From positions 868,001-932,000 of the forward strand of contig JBLDXI010000012.1 of NCBI GenBank assembly GCA_047495785.1: DNA of 64,000 bases. Reading direction: 5' to 3'. Position numbers and translations under genes: made by a program. The notes beneath the pieces are model-generated. The model was given only the letters and a program-made list of their open reading frames with translations, was not told where the DNA came from and did no database searches. The stretch's first letter is position 1, and each line of letters opens with the position of its first letter. Of the stretch, positions 6,029 through 52,280 are shown one piece after another. This DNA is from Lepidodermella squamata. Its lineage: Eukaryota; Animalia; Gastrotricha.

Positions 6029-6626
6029 TTATTTGCTGGGAGCAGCACCGGTTTCGACGGCGACCGAGTAGGAGAAGTTGTTGGAGGCCGAGTAGCTGCC
6101 GCTCTTGCTGCCCTTGCGACCCTTGCCGTGCTTGCCACCGTGCTTCTTGCCGCCAAACCTTTTGCCGCCGAACTTCTTGCCACCATGGCCCTTCTTGTTG
6201 CCGTGCTTCTTGTTGTAGCCGCCGAAGGAGCCCGACCGCGAGTACGAGCCGGACATGGATCCGCGCTTGTGCACGCGCATGAACTTCTTGGTGGAGACCT
6301 TGCGGGTGTGCTTGTTCGTGCGGGCCGACACCGACGCGGACACGGACTTGGAGAACGAGGCACGGCGGTGCTTGCGCCCGGCGACGAAGGCCTTCTTGGC
6401 CGGGCGCTTCTTCATCGCGTGCTTCTTCGGCTGCCGGTTGTACGACACGCTGATGGAGACGCTCTTCGAGACGCTCTTGCCCTTGTTACCACGGCCAGCC
6501 TCAACGCTGGTGAAAGCTAGAGGCAAACACATAAAAGGTAGTATAGAAGAATATTAAAAACCATAACACGACCCACTCACCGAGGCCCAGAAGTAGGACA
6601 GCTGCTAGTGCGAGAAAAGCGCGCAT
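6029..6626 (-). CDS. Secreted, highly basic Lys/Arg/Gly/Ser-rich protein, copy A (exons 6626-6581, 6516-6029)
   Basis: Signal peptide MRAFLALAAVLLLGLAFTSVEA is joined by GT-AG intron 6580-6517. Strong GC3 codon bias. Paralog at 18.4-19.5 kb has the same intron position. Confidence 0.88.
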
Positions 6627-15223: not shown

Positions 15224-15464
15224 AGCCGCTCTGAAAGCGACTGACCCCTCCGGAAGTAGCCCTAGTTAAAGAGCCACCAGGCCGGAACGTTCATCAACGG
15301 CCGCCTCGAGACCAGCCACCGGTGAAGGTCGCCGGGCTCGTGCGGCCAAGTTCGCGCTCAGGGCCAGTCACCACGTCTCGTCATCGCGGTTTGGGTTTGT
15401 CGTCAGATGAGGCTGACGTTGGGGCAAATCTAAATAAAGAAATGATCCCAAGAAGTATGATCTT
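15224..15464 (-). ncRNA. U3 snoRNA
   Basis: 5' end AAGATCATACTTCTTGGGATCATTTCT (boxes A'/A), box C' GATGACGA (15385-15378), box B GAGCGCGAAC (15359-15350), box C TTGATGA (15297-15291), variant box D CAGA (15233-15230), terminal stem CCGC/GCGG. Order and spacing match known U3. Confidence 0.9.
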
Positions 15465-15586
15465 AATTTAAATTTTAAAAATTCTTTGGCCCCGTTATGA
15501 GATGGTGCTTTATACAGCCAGTCGATAGCTATGACTATTCAAAAAATAAAGAAAAAAGAAAATAGAAAATTATTAATAAAAGGTTG

Positions 15587-15658
15587 CTCCTTGGCAGGGA
15601 ATCGAACCCTGGTCTCCCGCGTGACAGGCGGGGATACTAACCACTATACTACCAAGGA
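15587..15658 (-). tRNA. tRNA-Asp(GTC)
   Basis: TCCTTGG/CCAAGGA acceptor stem, CTGTCAC anticodon loop, GGTTCGATTCC T-arm, TTTT terminator 5 nt downstream. Confidence 0.97.
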
Positions 15659-16100: not shown

Positions 16101-17404
16101 TTAGGCAGTCTTGACGGTGACGGGCTTGACGTGGTTGACGTTGCAGTTGACGCCGTTGATGCCGCCGAAGGCCTGGACGGCGGCGTTGAAGCCTCCGAAG
16201 GCGGGCAGCTTGTTGTACAGCTCGGACATGGTCGGGCACTTGGCGATCTCCTCGGTGGTCATCTTCGGCAGCTGGCACTCGACGACGAGGTGGCCCTCCT
16301 GGGTCAGGCACGACTTGAGCTCAACCTTGGTCAGGTCGATCTTTGCAAGGGTCTAATATAAATAGATCGTTAAAGTTATGAGATTGGATGAATATAGCTA
16401 CTTACCTCGGGCAGGACGAACTTGCGCGAGTACTTGCGGGCGACGGTGTGCTCCTTGCCGTCCTTGGCCTCGTGGGCAGCCTCGACGACGACGGCGCGCT
16501 CGGCCTTGTTCAGGGTGACGGTGACTTCCTCAGGCTTGAAGCCCTTGAGCTCGAAGCACAGGTACAGCTGGCGGTTGCCCTCGACGTCGATCATGCGGAT
16601 CGGGTGGGTCAGGGTGTAGAGCTCGACCTCGGAGGACGGGCGGAAGGCGATGTTGTACAGCTTGTTGTCAGCCGACAGGGTGTTCGACCAGGTGTTGGCG
16701 CCGAAGGGGCCGAAGGTGGTCGGGAACGAGCCGGTCCAGTTGTTGGCGAGGCGGGCGGCGTTCCAGGTGTTGGAGGCACCACCGAAGCGCGACTCGGCGA
16801 CGCGGGCGGCGATGACGTAGCACTGCTTGGCGCAGACGTCGGCGAAGAGCTCGGCGCCGATGCGGGCGGCGAACTCGGCGGTGTAGATGGCACCCAGGCG
16901 CTGGGCGATGATGGCGCCCAGTTCGGCGCCGTGCTCGGCTCCGAAGGTGTAGCACCAGCGGGCGCACTGCTCGACCGGCCAGCCGTTGACGAGCTTGACG
17001 GCGAGCTCGGCACCCAGCTTGGCGCACATCTCGGCTCCCCACTGGGCGCCGATGCGGACGGCCACCTCCTGGCCGACGAAGGTGTTGAGGCGGGCGGCGA
17101 CGATGGCGGCCAGCTGGGCACCGCACTCGGCACCGAAGACGCGGCCGGTCTCGGCTCCGCACTCGATCGGCGAGGCGAAGGTGTTGTAGGCGATCGGGGA
17201 CGAGGCGAAGGCGTTGTTGATGCCAGCAGCAGCGGCGAACGGGGTCGGGACGGCGGCGTTGATGAGGCTGCGCTCAACAGACGACGGCGAGTAGATGCCG
17301 GCCTTGCTGCGGAGCAGGCTCTCGACGTTCATCGGGCTTGAGTAGCCGGCGATCGAGGGAGCGACGGTCGACAGGGTCGGTTGGAAGTTGTACGAGCAGG
17401 CCAT
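16101..17404 (-). CDS. Large alpha-crystallin/HSP20-domain protein, copy A (416 aa; intron 16405-16353)
   Basis: ACD motifs FELKGFKPEEVTVTL, VEAAHE, RKYSRKFVLP, LTQEGHLVVE. N-terminal GAxxGA repeats. TATA box at 17522-17517. Confidence 0.9.
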
Positions 17405-17947
17405 TTTAGAGTTTGAGGAGATGAGTGAAAACACGAACGAAAGCGAAAATGAGCGAGAAGATGCTTTGATTGAGCAAAGAGCTGATTGATGATATCCTAG
17501 AGGCGCAGCGGCGTCATTTATAGGCCTCCCTTGGCATGGAGCACGTGTGCAGCCTCGCGCGCCAAGAATAGCGAACAATTGAAATGAAAATTGATGCGGA
17601 GCCAGACGAGGGGGAGCACGCGATTCAGGTGAAACAATAGAACACTAAAACTGAAAAAATTGAATCGAAGCCAATAACAAGAAAACATTTCGCCATCCGC
17701 GCGTAAAAAGCGTCATATTCACAAAATTGAATTTCCATTTTACTTCAACATCATGCCGATGAAACCTACTGCGTACAAGTTGAAGCGCGTGTCGCGACTT
17801 CGCAATCCTGCTATTCGCGTCCTCCGTTTTCAAAGCTCGACACAGTCGACCCGCTCCTGCTATTCGAGCCTCTAATCTCGGCCGTTCCGAGACCGATCCG
17901 TTCCATCGCATCCTATGTCGCAAAGTGATGCTTCGCCGCCGTCGATC

Positions 17948-17974
17948 GAAAGGAAAGGAAAGGAAAGGAAAGGA
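17948..17974. repeat. (GGAAA)n pentamer microsatellite upstream of sHSP copy A
   Basis: gaaaggaaaggaaaggaaaggaaagga. Confidence 0.9.
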
Positions 17975-18401
17975 CCTAGTGTTATCCATCTTAAAAAATT
18001 ACTAACTTTAAATGTCAAGGTCACTTTCACCCTTGTTTTAATTTTTATCCTCCTCACAAAACGACTTTCGAGATAAATCGAAAAAAGTATTTTTGAACTT
18101 TGACAATCTCACAACATCAAAATTAGCAGTTGTCAATGCTGAAATGTCACCGATTGTTCAGGAGGAGGTAATCGACCCCGCCTGATGAACCCAATTGCAA
18201 ATTGTAAGCTTATTCGTGGAGTGCTACGGATGTTTACCAATAGAAATGCTGAATTGGAGGACGATCAAAAATCTCAAATTCATCTTCAATTGCCAATAGA
18301 ATTAGGCAGATTTTTCAGATTTTATTCCGTCAGTCAAATCGAGAATAAATTATCAATATCACTGCAAACTTAGGTGAGGAACAGTTTTTCAATTAAATTA
18401 T

Positions 18402-35898: not shown

Positions 35899-36298
35899 TG
35901 ACGTTATAACACTCGGCGCTTAAATCTCATCCATTGCGATTTCAGGTGATCAAATGTGTGATGATAGGTTATATTTAGTGTCTTTCAGTGAATTAAATAA
36001 TAGTGTCTGGCAATAATAAAAATGCTGATTGTGATCTTCAACGTGATTCATCATTTTCCTGGGATATATTTTCTATAAAAAGGCAATGTCCTTGCGTTTT
36101 GAAATTAAGAATCGACAGATGATTTTTGTTATTCATCCCGCATTCTCCGTCTTCCCAGGATCGCCCGAACAGAAATTTGGAAATTGCCCCACATTTCCCA
36201 GCCAGCCCAGGCCTCTTGAGACCGGACGATCGAGCAAAAGCTAGCGAGGCGGCACGCGATTTCGCTGCAAAAAAATATAAACAAAAACATAGTCAATT

Positions 36299-36512
36299 CT
36301 AAAAATAGAGCTTTGAAAATAAAAATAGTCGCGTGATTTCGTTTTTCGTTTCGTTTCGTTTCGTTTCGTTTCGTTTTTCCAAAAAAGGAAAATTTCCTCG
36401 CTTTTCGAAATTAAAAATAGCACCATAACAGCGGACGGCCCATCTTGCTGCTATTTTTAGCGTGTCTCGCCCGTGCTGAAAGTCGCGCCAAAAATCGACT
36501 TGGGCTATAAAA
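36299..36512 (+). promoter_or_regulatory. sHSP copy B promoter: three MEF2-consensus sites, (TTTCG)n array and TATA box
   Basis: ctaaaaatag 36299-36308, ttaaaaatag 36411-36420, ctatttttag 36451-36460; TATAAAA at 36506; (tttcg)n at ~36337-36375. Confidence 0.6.
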
Positions 36513-36616
36513 GCCGCTTGGTTGCGGTACCTAATTCATCATCAATCATTTCAATTTTCAAGCTTTCAAGCATTCTTTCTGATATTTTCTAAATCTTGTT
36601 CCTAATCGTCGACAAA

Positions 36617-38342
36617 ATGGCTTTCTCTTTCTCTAACAACGCTGGCTTCGACGGTCTCTCTGCCAAGTTCGGCCAATACAACCAAGCTGGTCTGGCTCCC
36701 TCGGCCACTACTGGCTTCGGTGGCATTAGCAACTTTGGTGCTCAAATCAACAACAGCAACGCCGCGACTCAAATCGGTGCCAAGATCGGCCATTCAGTCG
36801 GTCAAGAGTACGGTGCTCAGCTCGGTGCTGCCATCGCCGGTCAACTGAACGCCACCTTCGGAGCCCAGTGGGCTGCCCAGCTCGGAGCTGCTCATGGCGC
36901 TGAGGTCTTGGCTGAGTTGGGTGCCCAACTGGCCGTCTTCGCCGCCGCCACCGGATTCGGTGCCCAGTCGACCGCCCAACAGGGTGCCCAGTGGGGTGCT
37001 CAGGCCGGCGCCCAGTTGGCCGTTGTTCTGGCTGCCAAGCTCGGCGGACAGGCTGCCGCTGGAGTCTTCGCCAACAACCAGACTATCACCCAGATCGGTA
37101 GCTCCATCTTCTCGCAGGCTGGTGCCAAGCTGGGTGCTTTCGTCGCTGCTCAGATCAACGGCGGTGCCTTCGGTGCTGGTGCGAACAGCGGCCTTATCGC
37201 TGGCAACTTCGGCGGCTTCAACGCCCTCAACAACGGTCTATTCGGCGGCCTGAACGGCTACAACGCTGGCCTTTTCGGTGCCAACCACCTCAACAACTTC
37301 GGTGGTATTTTCGGCGGTAACGTCAACAACTTGGCTGGTGCCTACAACAACGGCCTCTTCGGTGGTGCCAACAACAACTTCGCCAACAACTTCTCTGGCC
37401 TCTTCGGTGGCAACGCTACCTTCGACGGTCAGCTCTCTGGCAACTTCGGCGCCAACACCTTCGGCGGTCTCTTCGGTGGTGCCAACCTCGCCAACCAGGC
37501 TGGTCTCTTCGGTGGTGCTTTCGGTGGTAACGTCAACCATTTGACTGGCGCCTACAGCAACGGTCTCTTCGGTGGTGCCAACAACAACTTCGCCAACAAC
37601 TTCTCTGGCCTCTTCGGTGGCAACGCTACCTTCAACGGCCAACTCTCGGGCAACCAACTGAACAACTTCGGTGCCAACACCTTCGGTAGCCTCTTCGGCG
37701 GTGCCAACCTCGCCAACCAGGCTGGTCTCTTCGGCGGCAACATCAACGGCCTCTTCAACTCGCAGGCTGCCGCCGACAAGCTGTACAACATCGCCTTCCG
37801 CCCGTCCAGCCAGGCCGAGCTCTACACCCTGACCAACCCGGTGCAGTACGTCAACAACCAAGGCAAGCGCCAGCTGTTCCTCGCCTTCGAACTCAAGGGC
37901 TTCAAGCCTGAGGAAGTCACCGTCACCCTGAACAAGGCCGAGCGCGCCGTCGTCGTCGAGGCTGCCCACGATGCCAAGGACGGCAAGGAGCACACCGTCG
38001 CTCGCAAGTACTCTCGCAAGTTCGTCCTGCCCGAGGTGAGACTTTGATCAAACTGACCTATAAATAACCTTAATTTTCCGATTATTCAAGACTCTCGCCA
38101 AGGTCGACCTGGCCAAGGTTGAGCTCACCTCGCAACTGAATGCCGATGGCTACTTGTTCGTCCAAGCCGAGCTGCCTCAGTTGACCACCGAAGAGATCGC
38201 CAAGCTGCCGTTGTCTCACAACCACCTCAACCAGATCGCTTTCAACAAGGCCCACAACAGCGCCCTGTACGGCAACAACAGCAACAACGTTTTCGCCCAC
38301 CTCGCCAACAACGTTACGCCTGTTACTGTCAAGACCGCCTAA
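36617..38342 (+). CDS. Large alpha-crystallin/HSP20-domain protein with GxxxG and GLFG/Asn repeats, copy B (556 aa; intron 38036-38090)
   Basis: ACD as in copy A, same intron position, same C-terminus PVTVKTA. Confidence 0.9.
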
Positions 38343-39821
38343 GCTTATCATCGGATGCCGAAAACCCTTGAAAACTTGAATAACTTCTGATGATTTGAAA
38401 TCATCGTTAATTTATAGTGATATCTCGTGATCAAAAATGTTATTGCTCTGAGCCCAAATAAATTCTGTGTTTCGGCATCATCTCTGTTTGCTTTAGTCAA
38501 AAAATTTCGACCACAAAATTATACTGCAAGTTGAAGCTGAAAATAATATTTCAAATGTTTTTTAAATTAAGAGATGTGGTCGAGATGTGGAACCGGAAGG
38601 TTAGGCTGAATCTTTTTCGTTTTTCGGCAGGCTAAAAGCTTTTAAACCCACCCGCAAGCAAATAACAGTATCTCTTTTCGTCATAGCTTCAATCAAGTAT
38701 TGAGGAGTCCATCTGAGAGAAAGCCATAAATATGCATTCAAAATCGCGATGGCTTTGCGAAGAAAAATAATTATTCGTACCTAAATTCATTTCAAAATTT
38801 TCCACAACCTGGTTTTACGACCTTTTCAGCTCAACTTCTGTTCTGAATTCTCCGAAGCTTTGGTTACAACAGAAAAGTCAGGGTCTTTTGCTCGCCAACC
38901 GGTCAACAATCTCGCACGTCTCTGGTATCTTCAGATCGGGTGACTTGAGCCTATGAAAATCAATGGCGAGATGGCGAGATAAATACCCCATGAATGCGAT
39001 AGCCTTGAACCAATTGATAGCCAAATCAGAATTCCTAAAATGCTTACCTCGATTAGGAATTACAGGTAAAATTATGACAGCATTTTCGGAAATTCTCGTA
39101 TAATTAGGAATAATTTGGTAACTACAACCGAACCAGATGTGAGCAAAATGTGTACTTACTGATTTCATTTTGAGCCGTTTAAACAGTCTGCCTAAGGTGA
39201 CACGATTCGGATCGTTTACTTGCCATTTTCGATTTTTCGTTTTCGAAATTTCTCAAATAACACCTGAAGCTTGAAAATTAGTTTCCTTAATTTCGAATTT
39301 TCCATAGGCATCTTGTACTAACTGGGCCCAGTAAAAACACTGCTGGAACCTGGAACAACCGGTTTTCGACAAAGTTGAGCAACAACAATACCAACAAGTA
39401 GTACTCGCGTATTAAATTTTATTTCAAATTCGAATTTGTTCATGCGATGGTACTAGAACGATGAGGTGATATTACGCGCGATGAGATTTCAATTTTCTCT
39501 CTCTGTCATTCTTAATACCCAAAAGACTAGTTCGCAAGCTTTTTTCTTCGATCAAATAATTCAGAATAATATCATCACTATTACGATCATGCAGTTTCCT
39601 CCGTTTTAAGTAGTAGACATCATTTGTTTGTAATAAGAACGCTATATATATAGAGGTGGATATAGGTACACGAAAAAACGTAGATATCTATATAACACAG
39701 ACAACATATTGGCGATGCATGTTGAGATGTTGTTGTTTTGGCTGATCAAAAAAAATTGTCAATTGTTCATATTATCATGGTAAAAATCATGCACGGTTGA
39801 TTGATTGTTTTCAGTAGTAGT

Positions 39822-45051: not shown

Positions 45052-46263
45052 ATGGCTGCCCCACCAGCTCAAGCGCAAGAGCATGCGATCAACATTCGAG
45101 TTATGAGATTGGCAAAACCTAGCTTTGCCTTGCAGGTGCCTGCTTTTCAATGTGATGGTGACATTTTTCAAGATGCTGCCAGCTCTGGATTCTTGAATGG
45201 TTGTGGCTTGGGAATGGGGCTTATTGTCCCTCAAACTTTCGGCATGGTGCATGTCGGCGAAGATTTTTCATGCCTTGTTTCAGTATTCAACGAATCACAG
45301 TCACGAATCGCTAATGAAATCGCTCTTCGTGCTGACCTGCAGACTCAGTCTCAAAGGACAACTCTTCAAGAAGTAGTTCCTATTACAGAGAAGACGTTGC
45401 CTGTGGGTGGCCGTTTTGATACAGTAATTAAAAGCAAGCTGACAGATACAGGAGCCCACATTCTAGTCTGCTCAATATCATACGCTGTCGAAGCGGAGAA
45501 ATTGAATTTCAGGAAGTTTTTTCGCTTCGATGTTCGGCGTTTGGCAGACATTCGTGTTCGAACGTTCCCAACGCCATCGAAATTATGGTTTTTAGAGGCC
45601 ACGTTGGCTAATACAACCGCTCAAGTCTTATGGCTAGAATCACTGGGTCTCAGCATTGCAACTTCTATGATTGGCTCATTAGTGGACGAGCCCTCGCCAT
45701 TATCGCGACTGTTGAAGCCACAAGAATCGCTTGTTGTTCTATTTTCTGTCGACAGAGATGTTTCATCATTGCAAACGAGAAACAGGTCAGCAAGTCAGAC
45801 CACCATGCAGCCGATTCCTGGTCAAATCGCACTCAAGTTTCGATCGCAATTTGGCGATGTCGCAAGCTCAGATTTTCTGACACAGATTCCAAGCGATGTT
45901 TACAGTCAAGCTAAAATGATTCTCCGAATGGACGCCCCATCTGACATTAACGTTGGTAGCTGCATTCCAGTGACGTTCAATATAACAAATGTCACGAATT
46001 CTAACTTGAGCCTCAATTTGGATCTCGGCACTGGAAGCGATTTTATTGGCGTTGGAGAGACTTCACAAACTACCAATGAAATTCTACCAGGCGAGCAAGC
46101 GTCTAGTCAATTCAAAGTTATCGCGTTGAAGCCAGGCTTCGTAAATTTTCCTCCGCTTTCTATATTTCTTAAAAGTCAGCATCAATACATACGCGACATG
46201 CCGACTCCAATGCTAACGATGTTCGCTAGCGTCCCCCAACCGTCAAGTGCAAATTCTTCGTAA
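45052..46263 (+). CDS. TRAPPC13: Trafficking protein particle complex subunit 13
   Basis: RVMRLAKPS, PQTFGMVHVGEDFSCLVSV, ADLQTQSQR, GAHILVCSISY, FRKFFRFDV. Confidence 0.9.
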   Translation: MAAPPAQAQEHAINIRVMRLAKPSFALQVPAFQCDGDIFQDAASSGFLNGCGLGMGLIVPQTFGMVHVGEDFSCLVSVFNESQSRIANEIALRADLQTQSQRTTLQEVVPITEKTLPVGGRFDTVIKSKLTDTGAHILVCSISYAVEAEKLNFRKFFRFDVRRLADIRVRTFPTPSKLWFLEATLANTTAQVLWLESLGLSIATSMIGSLVDEPSPLSRLLKPQESLVVLFSVDRDVSSLQTRNRSASQTTMQPIPGQIALKFRSQFGDVASSDFLTQIPSDVYSQAKMILRMDAPSDINVGSCIPVTFNITNVTNSNLSLNLDLGTGSDFIGVGETSQTTNEILPGEQASSQFKVIALKPGFVNFPPLSIFLKSQHQYIRDMPTPMLTMFASVPQPSSANSS

Positions 46264-46379
46264 TGGTTGGCTTACTTTCATGTTAATTTATTTGAGCTAT
46301 CAATTGTTAATAAATAATATACTTTATTGATTGATTAACTAAAGCTTCATTCTGATTTTAGAGTTTAGAGAGTGAAAGA

Positions 46380-49300
46380 ATGAACACCAGTATGTCTGGT
46401 GATATTTACAGCAAGCATGCGACGGGCCGTGATGTCGACGGTTAGTTATACCAAAATCAAATGAATAATTTTCATAATCGTGAATTTTTTAGAGCTCGTA
46501 ATGGCTACGCTTGACGCAGCTGGTGATCGAGACGAAAAAGCTCGCGATTCAGTGATTGCTTCCTTGGTGAAAATCGGCCAAAAGGAACCAATGCTAGTGC
46601 TTGTTTCTTGCGTTCGTCAGCTCGGAAAACAAGACAAAATTCAACGCGAACATCGAATTGCCGTCCTCATAGTCATGACGGAACTGATTCGAAATACAAA
46701 TCCATTTCCTCAATCTGACGTTTTGAACGCATGCATAACAGCAGCTGCTGGCGAATTGTGTGCCAGCAAAGACATCATTCCTGAATGGCAAACACCGGCT
46801 AGCAATGTTCTAGTGGCTGCTGGGGTTCACGATTGCCCGGCAGTTATGAATAGCATTCTAGATTTATTCAAAATCGGCCAGCTGCCTCATTATTTTATTA
46901 TTCATACCGTTGCAAATCTGGCAGCAGAGAACAGTAATTTTTCGCATTTTTTTCTGATCAGATTCATTAATTTTTCTGGTTTTTTTCCAGAATTTGGTTA
47001 CGTTCAATTCCTGCAGCAAGTTTTGAATAATTTACTTCCTAATTTGGGTCCATTGAGACATGATAACATGCGATATGTCTGCGCCTATGCCCTCGGAAAA
47101 TTTGCCGAAGCTTTGATCGATTATTTAGCTAATCTTGACCGAGCCCCTGATTCTACTGTTAGCAAAAACGATTTTCTTCAATCATTCAATACTGCATTCG
47201 ATATTTTGGTCGTTTGGCTGACGACCTCGAAAGACGTGAAATTACGAGCCGCCTTAATGGAGGCGATGGGTTACGTCGCGTTGCTATCAGCCCGCGAGAA
47301 AATTGAGTTACATCTAACACCAGTTATTACCAATCACTTGCTACCAGCGCTGAAGAAGCAAAACGAGTTCACATTCCCGGCAACGCAATGCCTGGCTATG
47401 TTGATTGACTCTTGCATTCAAAACGGGTCTATTCAAATGGGAATGATGGCTGATCCTATTATGTCATCTATGTTGTTTCAGCTGAACGAACTGGCTGATT
47501 TTTCGAATCCTATGGCGCTGAAAACGCATAACGAGATGTTGAGATGTTGCACTTTAATGTGTTTTAGCGATCCTCAGGCGACTATTACCTTCTTACTGAC
47601 AAGATTGGAGCCGAAATCGAACGTTGATCCGAAAATAAAATCGCGAGTTTTATCGGTTTTGCGGCATTTAGTCAACACTGCTGATAACGAAATCGGCGAG
47701 AGAAGGGCTACTGTAATGATAAGTCTTCGAGAGGTTGTTAACGATCAAGATGAATCTGTAGCTCGAGCTCTACTTCAGCTGATCGTTTCAATGGCTGACC
47801 ACGCGTATTTCGATCTAGAGGGCAGTCGAATTTTGATCGAATACGTCGTAAGGCAATGCGCTCTTAGCCAACCTAAGGGCATTAAGTTGGCACCAGGTGC
47901 TCCGAATTTTCAAGCTATCGCTAGTTTAGCCTCAAATGTGTTGAATTTGCTAACGACAACTCTACCTCAAGTCGAAGGTGCACTATGGCCAGGTTTGTTG
48001 GAATATCTTCTACCAGTCAGATATTCACAGGCCTTTGGAAATGTCTGCAAATCGCTTGCTTTCATCGCCCAGCGTCGTTTGGATAACCCTAATAACGGCA
48101 CAACGATTGAAAACAATCACTCACCCGACTATCCGATTTTGGTGAATTTCGCATCTCTGCCAAATTGCCCGAAACCTGTTGAAATTTTTGCGAGGTGCTT
48201 GCTAATGGCAGCTGATGAGACAGAACTCGATAAAGTTGGCAGTCATATCATCAAATTTCTGGACGTTTTCGCGCCGAATTTCTTCCAGGGCGTTCAGGAG
48301 ACGTCGCCGGACTGGCAGGCCTCCTTAAGCATTTGCACGCAACTCATCGAATCAGACCCATCTGAACGGTCGAAAGACTTCCAGAAGGAATGGGAAGCTG
48401 CTCTGGTGAAATTGCTACTCGCCGCGATTGAAATCGCTCAAAGCGCCCATCCTGATTGGATTGCTGAGTTGAGCCAGGCGTTTTTCGCCCAACTCGATTC
48501 GTATAAGACCTCCCCACGTAGCCGTTGCGTATTCCACGTAATCATCGCTGGTTGCTTGAGCCGAGCTGTGAAACGCGATTTTATCGATAAAACGGTCGAT
48601 GATTGGTTTGCATGTGTCGATCATTCCAATTTAGATGAACAGCAAAGCTTCGCCCTGGGATGTGGCTTCGCTGCTACGACCCAGCTTGACGTTATCCTCA
48701 ATAAAGTCGAAGCTGGATTGAAGGGCAAATCGACTGGTGCTGCTCCAAAACAGGAAAAATCGGGGTTCGCCAGTTTTTTCTCGAGCCTTGGCAAATCAGA
48801 AGCAGGGCCGAATGATCGTATAAAATCCACCCTAATGCTGTGTATGGGTAACGCAGTGAGCGCCGCCCCGCCTAGCCTGAGCATTTCTCGCATTGAGACA
48901 ATCGCAGTCCCTCATTTGCTATCCGCCGCTAACTCGTCGTCAAAACCCGCCCAGGACGCAGTTATCAGACTTTCGATCGCTAATTGCATTGAGACAATCG
49001 CTAGATCGCTGCATCCTGACGTAGCCGGCCGGATCGTGAATCTGGCTAAACGAGACGACTTACTCATTCAAGTGTGCAAGAAATTTGTAGGCGACGAGGC
49101 GCCGGCTAATATCAATTCAGAAGTTCGGCTGGCTAGTATAAAAGCCGCGACCGCTTTGATTGAACTCGACCCGGTTGTTCCGGAAAATTTGCTCGAACAG
49201 CTAGTCGTCACGCTGTCAAATTCAGTTTTTCAACTTCCAGAATCCGCAAGTAGCGAGGTTAAATTTTTGCATACGATGGATGCTCTGACCGAATTTATTC

Positions 49301-52280
49301 TAACGGTTTTCGCGAAATTTCAACAACCCTTGGCTGCAATCGCCTTTTTGATGAAACATTTGTCGGATGATAAGTGGCTTCAATCTTTGAGCGACTGGCA
49401 TCGAGATAGGGCTTCGCTAGTCATCTCGAAGGTGATTGATAAATTCCACGAGCGGATGATTTCTGGAGCGTTTGTCACATCAATCGGTGAACAGCAGAAT
49501 TCATTCGCGACGCTGTCTCATTTATTCGCGGTTCTCATCCCGCGTTTAGCCGACCCGAGTCAAACTGCGAGAACAGCTAGTTCTGAAAGTTTAGTTTCTT
49601 GCCTGAAAACACTCACCCACATGTCTGCGAAGGATATCGATGTGACTGATTTGGCTAAATCGATTCATGCAAGAATAACGAGTGGCGAGACTAATTCGCT
49701 GCATTCAGCTGTTTTGGACCTGTCTAAGCTGCTGAGTAAATTGTTGTCTGATATCAAGCCGTTGGTTCAGGCGCTGAGCTTGTCTGATTGCCAGAGTCAT
49801 GGTTCGGCGGCGTCTTGCTTGGTACTTCATACTATCATCAAGCAACGATCGAATGAGCTAGTCGATTTGGTCCCGTGGCTTTTCGATCGATTTTTGGGTG
49901 AGTTTATCATTTTTCCGATTTTTTTTTATTTTTTTCGGCTAATAATTCTCTTAACCCTGAAAATTAAACCTTTCCCGGCTGATTTTTTTTGGAAGATATT
50001 TATAGCCCTTGCAAATATTTCCTTGCGATTCCAATTTTAGTTTCTGTCCCAATTTATTTTCAAAATTGATAAGTGTCAATGGCGATTTCATCAATTTTGG
50101 AAACTTCATAGAAAATCTGATCTGAAATTTTCAACTCCAGTGCCATTTGATAGCTCTCTTGCTCGATATCAAAAATTGTGATAGCTTTTTGCTAGCGTCT
50201 CCTCATCAATCTGAAGATGGATTTGGTCTTCTATTAAGGTGGAGTTTATAAGAGCGATCTTCTGTGGCTTGAAATTTTAAAATCTCCTAGAAGAACTAGT
50301 TCCGGAAATTGTTAAGTAAAGAATCGTCACTACACTTTTGAAGATTTTTTGTAAATTCGGATAGTTCGCCAATCCCTTTTATTTACTCGTTTAAATTTTA
50401 TGGAAACAATGTCGGTCATTTTGATTGTTTTAATGATTTTCAGGTGAGCTGTCAAAACTTATCGATACCCCTCAAGAGTCGAAAAACGGTCCATCTAAGA
50501 AGGCCGGTCATTCGAATTCAGTCACAGAAGCCGGTGGACCTTCGAATTCAGCGCAAACTGCTCCTGTTCAAACCGGTATATTACGATGCTGCCGACTGCT
50601 GACCAACAATCAAATCACACCCAGCTTGAATGCTCTTCTTTCGATTCAATATCCCTATCCCGAATCGGTTTCGATTGTCTGGCGATATTTGGCCCAAGAT
50701 AACCAGTTGGCCGGGTCGATTTTGGATGTTTTCCTAGAAAAGTTGACGCGATGCGTGCCGTATGATGAGCCGAAGAAAAAACCGACTGTTTCACCCGGAG
50801 AAAGCGGCCAGATTGGTCGGTCTCGGCCGATTAGGGTGGCTCATATGCAGCCCTTATTGATTCTAGCCGCATTAGGGGACATGTTCACTGTGCCGGAAAT
50901 GGAAGGCAAATTACTCGCAAATTACCACCAAATTCTTGCTATATTGATCCTTCTCGTTTCGGGTTATTCTGGCGCGAAAGAGCCAAATAGAGATCAGCCG
51001 CAACAGGCTGCGAAAACGGGTAAAAATGCCGCCCCACCTGCGCCTCAGCTGAAAATGCCAACCCCCGTTAGCCAGGTTTTGTTGACCCTGAACAATTTCC
51101 TGAATTCAGCCTCATCGACTGATATTCGAAATGCAGTCGATGGCGTTTGGCCGGATTTTGCGAAAGACGACCACGTTCTCGAGGCGATTTCGAAGCTAGC
51201 TGCTGAGCTTGGAGCATCGCGACCGAAACAAATGGCGAAAATCGCCAATATTCTCCTGCCCCATTTTACGTCACCCTACGACACGTATCGATCGGCAGTT
51301 GCTGCCTGTCTGGCTGAATTCATCACGCAACAAAAGCCGAATGAGGGCGAAGATTCGAATTTGATTGAAACGCTTATCGGAAGTGTTCAAGGCCATTTAA
51401 CTGATCAGTCTTTCGAGGTTCGGCTGTACTGTTATCGCGGCATGGGTAACGCCGGGTCGAAAGACGAAGATTTAGTCAATCGCCACGCAACCAGCCTCCT
51501 TAATTGCCTGCTTATGGGCCTGGAAGATCGAGACGATAACGACGGAGCGATCAGTCTTGAATCTATCAAAGGTCTTGGTAAGATTCTATCGAAATGCTCC
51601 GAGCAAGTTGTTCGGCCGATTTTTGTCAACATCGTTGTTCGTATCAAAGTTTGCTTTGATAACGAAAATGAAGACATTCGGGCTGAAAGTATCAAGTTAT
51701 TCGGCGAATTGACGCGTTTCGCCACCGGACCGAGTGAAGTCACTGTCTGGGAACAAGCCCATCTCGCCCTCGTGCCAGTTTGGGTTCACCTTAATGACAC
51801 TGATTCGGAGGTTTCGCTAGCCAGTGCCGGTGCTTTGATTGCGCTGGCTAACGTTCTCGGGGCAGCTGCGGTTCAGCAGCTGTTCCAGAAGGCTCTTGGG
51901 CCGCTTTGTCAACAACAATCGACTAGTTCGCTTCATTTCGTCGAATTTTCATCCTCGGCCGCTGGTCTTTTAGCCGAATATTTCGCAGATCGAATGTTTT
52001 CGTACTACACTCAATTTTCAACCGGATATTTTGTCAGTCCGAAACCGAAAATTCGAGCAAATGCTGTTACAATTTTAGGTTTGATACCTTGAATAATTGG
52101 AAAATTCCACCTTAATTAAATTTTTCTACAGGTTTTCTATTGGCTAATTTGCCCCCGGAAAAGCACAATGCTGTAGGCAAGCATCATTTGTGTACGCAGT
52201 TGATTTCGATGTTGAAGGATTCCTCGGCTGAAGTTCGATGCCGAGCGGCCGAAGCTATTGGCCTGTTGGCTCACTACTAA
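46380..52280 (+). CDS. MROH1: Maestro heat-like repeat-containing protein family member 1 (introns 46441-46492, 46934-46990, 49898-50443, 52079-52131)
   Basis: EWQTPASNVLVA, LPHYFII, HNEMLRC, LWPGLLEYL; C-terminal LKDSSAEVRCRAAEAIGLL. Confidence 0.88.

Follow-up and report, generated by a model that had tools for sequence, protein, structure and literature searches.

The region between 36617 and 38342 (+ strand) of the window, namely the whole 64,000-nucleotide stretch of Lepidodermella squamata DNA that was analysed, encodes a small heat-shock protein (sHSP) in which the α-crystallin domain (ACD) is preceded by an Asn-rich array of GLFG repeats. The preferred reading, drawn from the sequence and from modelling and held with a probability of about 50%, is that of a cohesive and multivalent array, whose valency would be multiplied by sHSP oligomerisation, giving constitutive gel- or condensate-like self-assembly. 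No described protein combining an ACD with FG or GLFG repeats was found in the literature or in sequence searches, in agreement with the first-pass annotation, to which this architecture was new; however, the gene is not a one-off, and it belongs to an amplified, lineage-specific sHSP family.

Regarding the gene model, the two-exon sHSP-GLFG gene is genuine, transcribed and spliced. The ORF and its translation give a protein of 556 residues on the + strand by joining 36617-38035, the coding part of exon 1 (aa 1-473), to exon 2 (38091-38342), which contributes the second half of the ACD, the C-terminal extension and the stop codon; the 55-nt GT..AG intron between them (38036-38090) has the same position as in a paralogue found in the window. 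Contigs from the cDNA-like run X1 match the window exactly from 36603 on and span 36603-38434, with the flanks uncovered; over exon 2, RNA contigs extend across 38089-38434, and coverage stops at about 38434-38486. The GT..AG joint is spliced in runs X4 and X2, with a loose end at the joint in X1; a contig from X4 (37710-37803) links the FG array to the ACD in RNA, and the mRNA-derived relative P0002 reads PETLAKVD uninterrupted over the exon junction. The 556-residue spliced model proposed at first inspection is thus borne out by the ORF, the RNA contigs and the removal of the intron in RNA, and its confirmation at transcript level extends to the entire coding region, repeats included. The protein has a single Met, encoded by the sole ATG in exon 1; hence, no internal ATG is available from which the crystallin domain could be translated with the repeats left out.

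As for the flanking signals, a TATA box (TATAAAAG, 36506-36513, +) can be read directly in the sequence and is followed, about 30 nt downstream, by the initiator-like TCATCAATCA, common to the promoter of the paralogue; an AATAAA polyadenylation signal, also a direct reading, stands at 38457-38462 (+). The three-unit heat-shock element GAAnnTTCnnGAA, searched with at most one mismatch, is absent from 36000-36616 and 17405-18000, the regions upstream of the two genes; a heat-shock-element promoter is common among sHSPs, and it is not a defining feature. Three MEF2-consensus-like sites occur upstream of the gene, and they could signal a muscle role as in other metazoan sHSPs, or derive from repeats; as a muscle signal they were discarded, identical 10-mers being present in another part of the window, within a MITE-like hairpin. 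No signal-peptide-like N-terminus was recognised on inspection.

The FG array occupies aa 183-385 (37163-37771, +) and has 19 FG motifs, nine of which are GLFG, with a pitch of about 10 residues. All the motifs listed by the first-pass annotation were located in the translation: the nine exact GLFG start at aa 207, 218, 246, 261, 284, 296, 316, 331 and 370, GIFG and SLFG are found at 230 and 358, respectively, and NFG and TFG are present as well; FG dipeptides are 24 in the whole protein, and within the array they are spaced by 4-18 residues. The array is composed of 26% Gly, 22% Asn and 13% Phe, with 0.5% of charged amino acids (one residue in aa 186-385), and the stretch of some 390 residues ahead of the ACD, described as almost uncharged, has indeed 11 charged residues out of 390 (2.8%). 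When aa 186-385 were shuffled, the mean number of GLFG was 0.19 and the maximum was 3 in 20,000 shuffles, compared with the nine observed. AF2 gave pLDDT values of 30-51 over the array, which is consistent with disorder, although as weak evidence since it relies on two aligned sequences only; an ESM Atlas feature search with the FG array alone returned no match.

Part of the array, as judged from its copies, has been enlarged by the recent duplication in tandem of a unit of 210 nt (70 aa), located at 37297-37737 (+), the second copy of which has 12 nt inserted. Tandem Repeats Finder reported 37297-37687 with a period of 210, 1.9 copies and 84% matches, while a repeat search paired 37297-37444 with 37507-37654 (91%) and 37441-37515 with 37663-37737 (92%); the unit and the tandem arrangement noted at first were therefore right, and the boundaries given for them were about 13 nt off. 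If one copy of the duplicate is dropped, six GLFG are left. Over the 70 aligned codons of the two copies, 53 are unchanged, 11 carry synonymous differences and 6 non-synonymous ones, synonymous sites being only about a quarter of all sites; this comparison indicates that purifying selection, together with optimal codons, has preserved the sequence of the array.

The other modules of the protein were delineated with AF2 and Foldseek runs on the exon-1 product, in which the ACD was folded only as its exon-1 half. AF2 predicts, in order, a disordered tail, a four-helix Gly/Ala bundle (aa 47-181), the disordered FG array (aa 186-393) and the ACD. The low-complexity N-terminal tail (aa 1-46, 36617-36754, +) has three FG motifs and pLDDT of 28-34. 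The predicted Gly/Ala/Gln-rich four-helix domain (36755-37159, +) consists of helices 47-77, 83-112, 116-152 and 155-181, with pLDDT over 10-residue blocks of 65-92, mostly 76-92; no homologue of it was found among 1.84 billion representatives, and comparison with the PDB retrieved generic helix bundles only, with Z < 7, so that no fold was assigned to this domain.

The ACD is, from its sequence and predicted structure, of the metazoan type, with the canonical fold and motifs of sHSPs. Its first half, together with the preceding motif FRP...E.YTLTNP, is encoded at 37799-38035 (+) and matches Pfam HSP20 with E 1e-5; exon 1 alone scores 26 bits against a cut-off of 20.8 in the PF00011 profile check. 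The AF2 model, which agrees with this and with the original assignment, has strands from aa 409 and pLDDT over 10-residue blocks of 69-89 within aa 401-473; Foldseek relates it with probability 1.0 to the cores of alphaB-crystallin, HSPB6, SIP-1 and Tsp36, with rmsd of 1.1-3.5 over 45-50 columns. R463 and R467, in the R-K-F/Y-x-L-P strand, are invariant across 16 family sequences, and the conserved arginine of this strand corresponds to alphaB R120. Finally, the V-T-V at aa 551-553 (38322-38330, +), three residues from the end, is a predicted I/V-x-I/V anchoring motif; in sHSPs, this motif docks into the beta4/beta8 groove of a neighbouring subunit, and the relatives of this protein terminate with IPVKT or PVTVKT.

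The likeness of the array to the GLFG nucleoporins is one of motif and composition and not of homology, and on sequence grounds it is read as convergence. By phmmer, the sole significant PDB match is a GLFG nucleoporin (9hcj chain J0, E 7e-10), with a bias exceeding the score, and Nucleoporin_FG is the only Pfam family that surfaces for the array; both results fit the cohesive GLFG-nucleoporin pattern claimed at the outset, but in the FG-repeat profile check the Pfam score was 15.1 bits (E 0.043), under the gathering cut-off of 32.2. Pfam found neither a GLEBS motif nor a C-terminal autoproteolytic domain, HSP20 being the sole domain above threshold and the C-terminus being the ACD. Nup98 FG domains are depleted of charge and have one motif per ~12 residues (PMC9579204), and FG cohesion rises 3-5-fold per residue of spacer shortening (PMC9918544). 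In common with Nup98, Nup100 and Nup116, the sHSP has GLFGG every ~10-12 residues, with spacers rich in Asn, Gly, Ala or other polar residues, nearly no charge and predicted disorder (PMC9579204, PMC9918544, PMC4283134); it differs from Nup98 in the extent of the array, 190-200 aa with ~19 motifs against 500-700 aa with ~50 (PMC9579204), and from all three in that it has no pore anchor and its array is fused to a chaperone domain.

The paralogue, a 416-aa sHSP gene with Cys-rich sequence located at 16101-17404 on the - strand, ~20 kb from the GLFG gene, has the same four-helix domain, intron position and ACD (Pfam HSP20, 28.9 bits); all the modules are common to the two proteins except the GLFG array, in place of which the paralogue has a short linker with five FG motifs and zero GLFG. 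Identity is 33% in the four-helix region and 46% in exon 2, and at the DNA level it reaches 97% over 50 ACD codons; gene conversion was considered and rejected, because codon bias and identical residues account for most of this value. The environmental relatives carry other uncharged aromatic repeats at the position of the array (FPSTFGG x5, SPMSNWS x7, Met/Pro-rich arrays), some of them FG-rich and none with GLFG; the transcripts L009 and L010 have unequal repeat numbers, and the member P0001 has two ACDs. No annotated family member was found in public genomes, and the nearest named ACDs are those of a mollusc p36-like protein and of a nematode sHSP (E ~1e-4), the ACD-containing matches of named relatives being 29-42% identical to the query. 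Word-indexed searches with exon 1 and its ACD gave no match, as low-complexity words swamped the candidates and few exact 5-mers were shared, and an ESM Atlas feature search with the whole exon 1 returned weak sHSP leads only (0.77).

As for expression, the gene has a GC3 of 0.75, whereas the neighbouring ORFs lie mostly at 0.42-0.49, with two at 0.60-0.62, and its codon choice is extreme, with TTC:TTT of 46:1 and AAC:AAT of 70:1. An antisense ORF at 37238-37993 is taken as a by-product of these GC3-rich codons. High expression had been deduced from the bias, which is strong, but the RNA depth of the gene itself is modest beside its paralogues: 1266 contigs stack on the ACD, with a summed depth in X1 above 1e5, versus ~100 for the GLFG gene, or ~1/1000 of the family peak. 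The GLFG gene may then be a minor, specialised member of the family.

In the mechanism proposed here, the array would have arisen by expansion of a short FG-bearing linker like that of the paralogue, and it would constitute a sticker region convergent with Nup98-type FG domains rather than descending from them. Nineteen motifs on a single chain would be insufficient for condensation at low concentration; the valency would be raised by the pairing of ACDs, by higher oligomers and perhaps by the helical bundle, leading to dense gel- or condensate-like assemblies. With the formula of PMC9579204, treating the oligomer as one long chain and using parameters from a different spacer (GGLFGGNTQPAT), the extrapolated saturation concentration is ~0.4 mM for 19 repeats, ~30 μM for 38, falling to almost zero for a 12-mer. 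Since the heat-shock promoter is absent, the protein is envisaged to act constitutively, supplying in bulk a matrix with a sequestering, protective or structural role, in a mode like that of yeast Hsp42 or lens α-crystallin and unlike that of a classical stress-induced holdase. A bolder version, which is unlikely, has the GLFG members building a cytoplasmic FG hydrogel outside the pore, with ACD oligomers as the hubs that cross-link short arrays; this would be a dense permselective or mechanical intracellular material, such as a protective matrix or a skeletal layer of syncytial tissue, and it would admit transport-receptor-like proteins while excluding others. If true, no natural FG phase before it would have had a role outside the pore or an sHSP as its scaffold.

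Alternatively, the protein could be an ordinary holdase whose aromatic, disordered N-terminal region has been enlarged; its oligomers would be polydisperse and stay in solution, with no phase of their own. In favour of this, the ACD is canonical, as are the conserved arginines and the V-x-V at the C-terminus, and the many low-complexity flavours among the family members suggest loose sequence requirements. Moreover, the N-terminal regions of sHSPs are typically disordered and rich in Phe, Trp and Pro, and they are used for substrate binding and oligomer contacts. This explanation is nevertheless judged rather unlikely, given that ~390 residues ahead of the ACD are several times the usual length and are nearly free of charge, that the regular GLFGG motif and its spacers appear to be under purifying selection, that the heat-shock element is absent upstream, and that bulk expression across the family suits a material better than a catalytic-scale chaperone. 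The pattern of substitutions weighs also on the possibility of a neutral expansion of low-complexity sequence, the array being a functionless by-product of replication slippage tolerated in one of many redundant paralogues. The recent date of the duplication (91-92% DNA identity) and the variable repeat number of L009 and L010 speak for it, yet it is very unlikely: the synonymous differences outnumber the non-synonymous ones in spite of the small share of synonymous sites, optimal codons have been retained almost without exception, the frame is open across 556 codons of an expressed gene, and run X4 holds, in addition, variant FG contigs with 90-95% identity.

Least probable of all is a pore-directed chaperone. 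Its array would serve for partitioning into the FG phase of Nup98 or for binding transport receptors, and with it the protein would guard FG nucleoporins or cross the pores unaided. The type and spacing of the motifs are those of FG phases, and GLFG-repeat fragments, tested from 7 to 70 repeats, do partition into a host FG phase, with a log partition coefficient linear in repeat number (PMC9579204). Against it, no nucleoporin anchor domain was found, Nucleoporin_FG stays below threshold, the paralogue and all the environmental relatives do without GLFG, and no link of the locus to nuclear-pore genes emerged within the window. An abundant free GLFG protein would also be expected to compete with transport.

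Returning to self-assembly through the array, the closest parallel is yeast Hsp42, an sHSP "sequestrase" with a prion-like domain in its long N-terminal extension (PMC5881502, reviewed in PMC13287201), which drives the assembly of deposits (PMC5881502, PMC13287201). In both proteins, the ACD stands behind a long, disordered, uncharged and Asn-rich extension; in the present one this amounts to ~390 residues before the ACD, with the nearly uncharged array being 22% Asn and 26% Gly. Hsp42 differs in being linked to stress and in having an extension made of the prion-like domain and a second disordered region, described with neither FG/GLFG repeats nor a helical bundle (PMC5881502, PMC13287201). 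The GLFG protein, for its part, is a member of an amplified family of animal sHSPs, and 473 of its residues are encoded before the intron. Sequestering sHSPs aside, the Tsp36/p36-type proteins of flatworms and molluscs (PDB 2bol; "small heat shock protein p36-like" of Babylonia areolata) are among the closest named ACDs, but they are devoid of the four-helix Gly/Ala domain and of the FG array; Tsp36 has two ACDs, as in P0001. The lens α-crystallins and Artemia p26 are bulk constitutive sHSPs of ~20-26 kDa with no repeat arrays; the likeness is in having sHSP family members that are very abundant without heat shock and act by mass. The Gly/Phe-rich regions of Hsp40/DnaJ and the glycine loops of keratin and loricrin are uncharged Gly/aromatic segments on a folded assembly domain; they are not known to be homologous to the array, their motifs are unlike and they have no regular GLFG period. 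A literature search on sHSPs in the rotifer integument returned nothing relevant.

Work on FG phases has so far been almost confined to nuclear pores and engineered repeats. If the self-assembly reading holds, this gene would amount to a natural experiment, with a short GLFG array joined to an oligomerising chaperone domain, and the published scaling of cohesion with repeat number and spacer length could be tested on it; cohesive GLFG repeats would also have originated in evolution a second time, independently. The Hsp42 idea of sHSPs working via self-associating low-complexity extensions would be extended to an amplified, very highly expressed animal family, and assemblies with a structural role, if this were proved, would add a new class of intracellular biomaterial.

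As for the rest of the window, it also encodes a TRAPPC13 product, which gave no hit in an exact look-up and has metagenome proteins as its best relatives, and Rfam identified U3 and one tRNA only.

Regarding the gene model, the + strand GLFG gene starts at an ATG at 36617, with exon 1 extending to 38035 and exon 2 running from 38091 to the stop codon at 38340-38342; the 55-nt intron between them has GT..AG borders, and splicing and translation give a product of 556 aa. Four public sequencing runs were compared with 36300-38700 as contigs, and the expression levels, strand and transcript ends obtained in this way are approximate. Contigs of run X1, identical to the window, cover 36603-38434 with zero depth in both flanks, and the depth is about equal over the N-terminal half (80-130) and at the 3' end (124). 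The 38035/38091 joint was seen in the RNA run X4 and again in X2, which derives from a more distant relative; moreover, the environmental family relative P0002, whose contig is mRNA-derived and carries a poly(A) tail, has PETLAKVD without a break over the position of this splice junction. Run X3 was read as DNA, since its depth extends over both flanks of the gene. The two-exon model of the first-pass annotation is thus supported, and the available data hold no sign of transcripts starting downstream of the repeats: the X1 depth is even, an X4 contig (37710-37803) spans the FG array into the alpha-crystallin domain (ACD), and the single Met of the protein is the start Met, so that no internal ATG could start translation of the ACD alone. 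One X1 contig has a loose end with primer-like sequence, presumably that of the SMART cDNA primer, and this end suggests a cDNA library but is not taken as a mapped start site.

As for the protein, AlphaFold2 was run on the exon 1 product with a 16-sequence alignment, informative mainly for the ACD. Residues 1-45 are predicted to be disordered (pLDDT about 30), while residues 47-181 form four helices (47-77, 83-112, 116-152 and 155-181; pLDDT block means 65-92, most of them 76-92), for which the fold search returned generic bundles only. No confident structure was obtained for residues 186-393 (pLDDT 30-51); beta strands follow from residue 409 (pLDDT up to 89), and in Foldseek they match the cores of alphaB-crystallin, HSPB6, SIP-1 and Tsp36. 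Pfam HSP20 exceeds its cut-off with exon 1 alone, so the ACD proposed behind the repeats is confirmed by both approaches. V-T-V, among the last residues, corresponds to the I/V-x-I/V anchoring motif. Inspection of the N-terminus shows no hydrophobic core of a signal peptide and no basic residues, and the protein is taken as intracellular on this ground.

The repeat region has the motif counts and the nearly uncharged composition described for it previously: 9 exact GLFG, one GIFG, one SLFG and further NFG, TFG and AFG motifs make up 24 FG dipeptides, and only 11 of the 390 residues of the N-terminal part are charged. The FG array itself has one FG per ~10 residues, with GLFGG dominant, 22% Asn, 26% Gly and 0.5% charge; shuffling residues 186-385 in 20,000 trials gave a mean of 0.19 GLFG and a maximum of 3. 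The tandem duplication also stands, although its boundaries had been placed about a dozen bases off: Tandem Repeats Finder reports 1.9 copies of a 210-nt unit at 37297-37687, and a repeat search gives 91-92% identity between the two copies, the second of which carries a 12-nt insertion. Removal of one copy leaves 6 GLFG in 126 aa. Comparison of the 70-aa copies found 53 identical codons, 11 synonymous and 6 non-synonymous differences; with synonymous sites being only ~1/4 of all sites, this pattern indicates purifying selection on the repeat sequence. Variant contigs of the FG region, at 90-95% identity, occur in X3 and X4.

The likeness to cohesive nucleoporins holds for the pattern but not for the profile. 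In published Nup98 FG domains, a motif occurs about every 12 residues and charge is extremely depleted (PMC9579204), and the array matches them well in spacing, GLFGG usage, Asn/Gly spacers and charge. However, phmmer against all PDB sequences gave one significant match, the GLFG nuclear-pore protein 9hcj_J0 (E 7e-10), whose aligned stretches are all weak and whose score is smaller than its bias term; Nucleoporin_FG, the sole Pfam family appearing, reaches 15 bits against a cut-off of 32. In addition, the array has one third of the length usual in GLFG nucleoporins, and the protein lacks a pore-anchoring domain. These features lead to the conclusion that the array probably reflects convergence on the cohesive FG design and not nucleoporin membership.

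The window contains a paralogous small heat-shock protein (sHSP) gene (17404-16101, - strand) with the same intron position, a four-helix domain at 33% identity and a nearly identical ACD core. Only ~40 residues, with a few FG motifs and no GLFG, separate its helix bundle from the ACD; with this short linker at the same place, the GLFG array seems to have grown out of a short aromatic linker that was already present. Fifty ACD codons (16406-16555 in the paralogue, 37886-38035 in the GLFG gene) are 97% identical in DNA, the 43 codons preceding them 76%, while the proteins encoded by exon 2 share an identity of only 46%; codon bias and residue conservation account for most of the 97%, and gene conversion, considered as its cause, is not claimed. 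An exhaustive HMMER search with the paralogue exon 1 against 1.84 billion representatives gave only 49 proteins at E 1e-3 or better, all matched over the ACD and the conserved FRP...E.YTLTNP lead-in, and none over the helical domain. The best matches were products of ~1-kb metatranscriptome or Logan contigs, and the nearest named proteins were a mollusc p36-like sHSP and a nematode sHSP (E about 1e-4). The N-terminal parts of the relatives are all poorly charged low-complexity arrays, in Pro/Thr/Asn/Tyr/Trp, Met/His or Gly/Phe/Ser flavours; some have tandem FPSTFGG repeats, with up to 17 FG in one protein, and GLFG is absent from the arrays of all environmental relatives. Two pairs of near-identical environmental transcripts of the family (L009 and L010, L011 and L012) differ solely in the count of the 7-aa FPSTFGG repeats or of a longer repeat block, and thus N-terminal arrays vary in copy number within populations.

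Regarding expression, 1266 X1 contigs are stacked on the ACD core with a summed depth >1e5, denoting a large and very highly expressed sHSP family; the GLFG gene, with ~100 over its unique parts, is a modest contributor. The codon bias from which high expression had been proposed is indeed extreme (TTC 46:1, AAC 70:1, GC3 0.75, compared with 0.42-0.49 for most neighbouring ORFs, 0.60-0.62 for two and 0.93 for the paralogue). Both genes have a TATA box and a common initiator-like motif, and no three-unit heat-shock element (≤1 mismatch) was found upstream of either.

Published work indicates how such an array might behave. The saturation concentration of GLFG repeats falls log-linearly with repeat number (PMC9579204), and shortening the spacer by one residue lowers it 3-5-fold (PMC9918544). 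The published formula (PMC9579204) gives ~0.4 mM for 19 repeats, ~30 uM for 38 and practically zero for a 12-mer, a crude extrapolation that treats the oligomer as one chain and whose fitted construct has different spacers. The array alone would be too short to condense at ordinary concentrations; the ACD, the V-x-V anchoring and perhaps the helical bundle would multiply its valency, and condensation should follow. This predicted gain, together with constitutive, codon-optimised expression and an amplified family, points to a bulk self-assembling protein (probability about 0.5), which may form a sequestering or protective matrix, like the deposits of yeast Hsp42, or a material comparable to lens crystallin, and would not be a stress-induced soluble holdase.

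A possible but doubtful alternative is that the protein is a holdase of the ordinary type whose aromatic N-terminal region is oversized. That the array is a neutral product of slippage is improbable, as both the selection and the codon evidence oppose it. A chaperone directed to the pore, or a binder of transport receptors, is very improbable: although the partition of GLFG fragments into FG phases (PMC9579204) makes it physically plausible, it is backed by no domain, no neighbour and no pattern in the family. Yeast Hsp42 is an sHSP already known to have a self-associating prion-like extension (PMC5881502). Full-text literature searches found no paper on an ACD fused to FG or GLFG repeats, and nucleoporins and nuclear pores both go unmentioned in a 2026 review of sHSPs and condensates.

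A perfect (TTTCG)6.6 microsatellite (36344-36376) lies in the promoter region of the GLFG gene, and three MEF2-consensus-like 10-mers (YTAWWWWTAR) are located within 160 nt upstream of the gene (36299-36460); the whole window has 17 such sites versus 8.7 expected. The pair CTAAAAATAG / CTATTTTTAG also lies at 2313-2350, inside a MITE-like hairpin (2192-2457; 70-nt inverted arms, 86% complementary, 126 nt apart), so the upstream sites may derive from a repeat instead of being muscle enhancers. Just downstream of the paralogue, on the - strand, are a U3 snoRNA gene (15225-15464, 102 bits) and a tRNA-Asp(GTC) gene (15586-15658). The product of the ORF at 6029-6532 (- strand) is a low-complexity protein, extremely basic and striped with serine, that has SxSVS and GGKK-type repeats and no Pfam match. 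Finally, TRAPPC13 followed by a Maestro-type HEAT-repeat gene (45052-52092) is syntenic with ENA metagenome contigs (L001, L002, L003, L007), whose TRAPPC13 is 55% identical to that of the window, and one such sample has a family sHSP next to cathepsin, FMO and mitoguardin genes; therefore, those environmental samples contain a relative of this animal. The identity of TRAPPC13 to the other homologues found is only 27-29%, which suggests a fast-evolving lineage.
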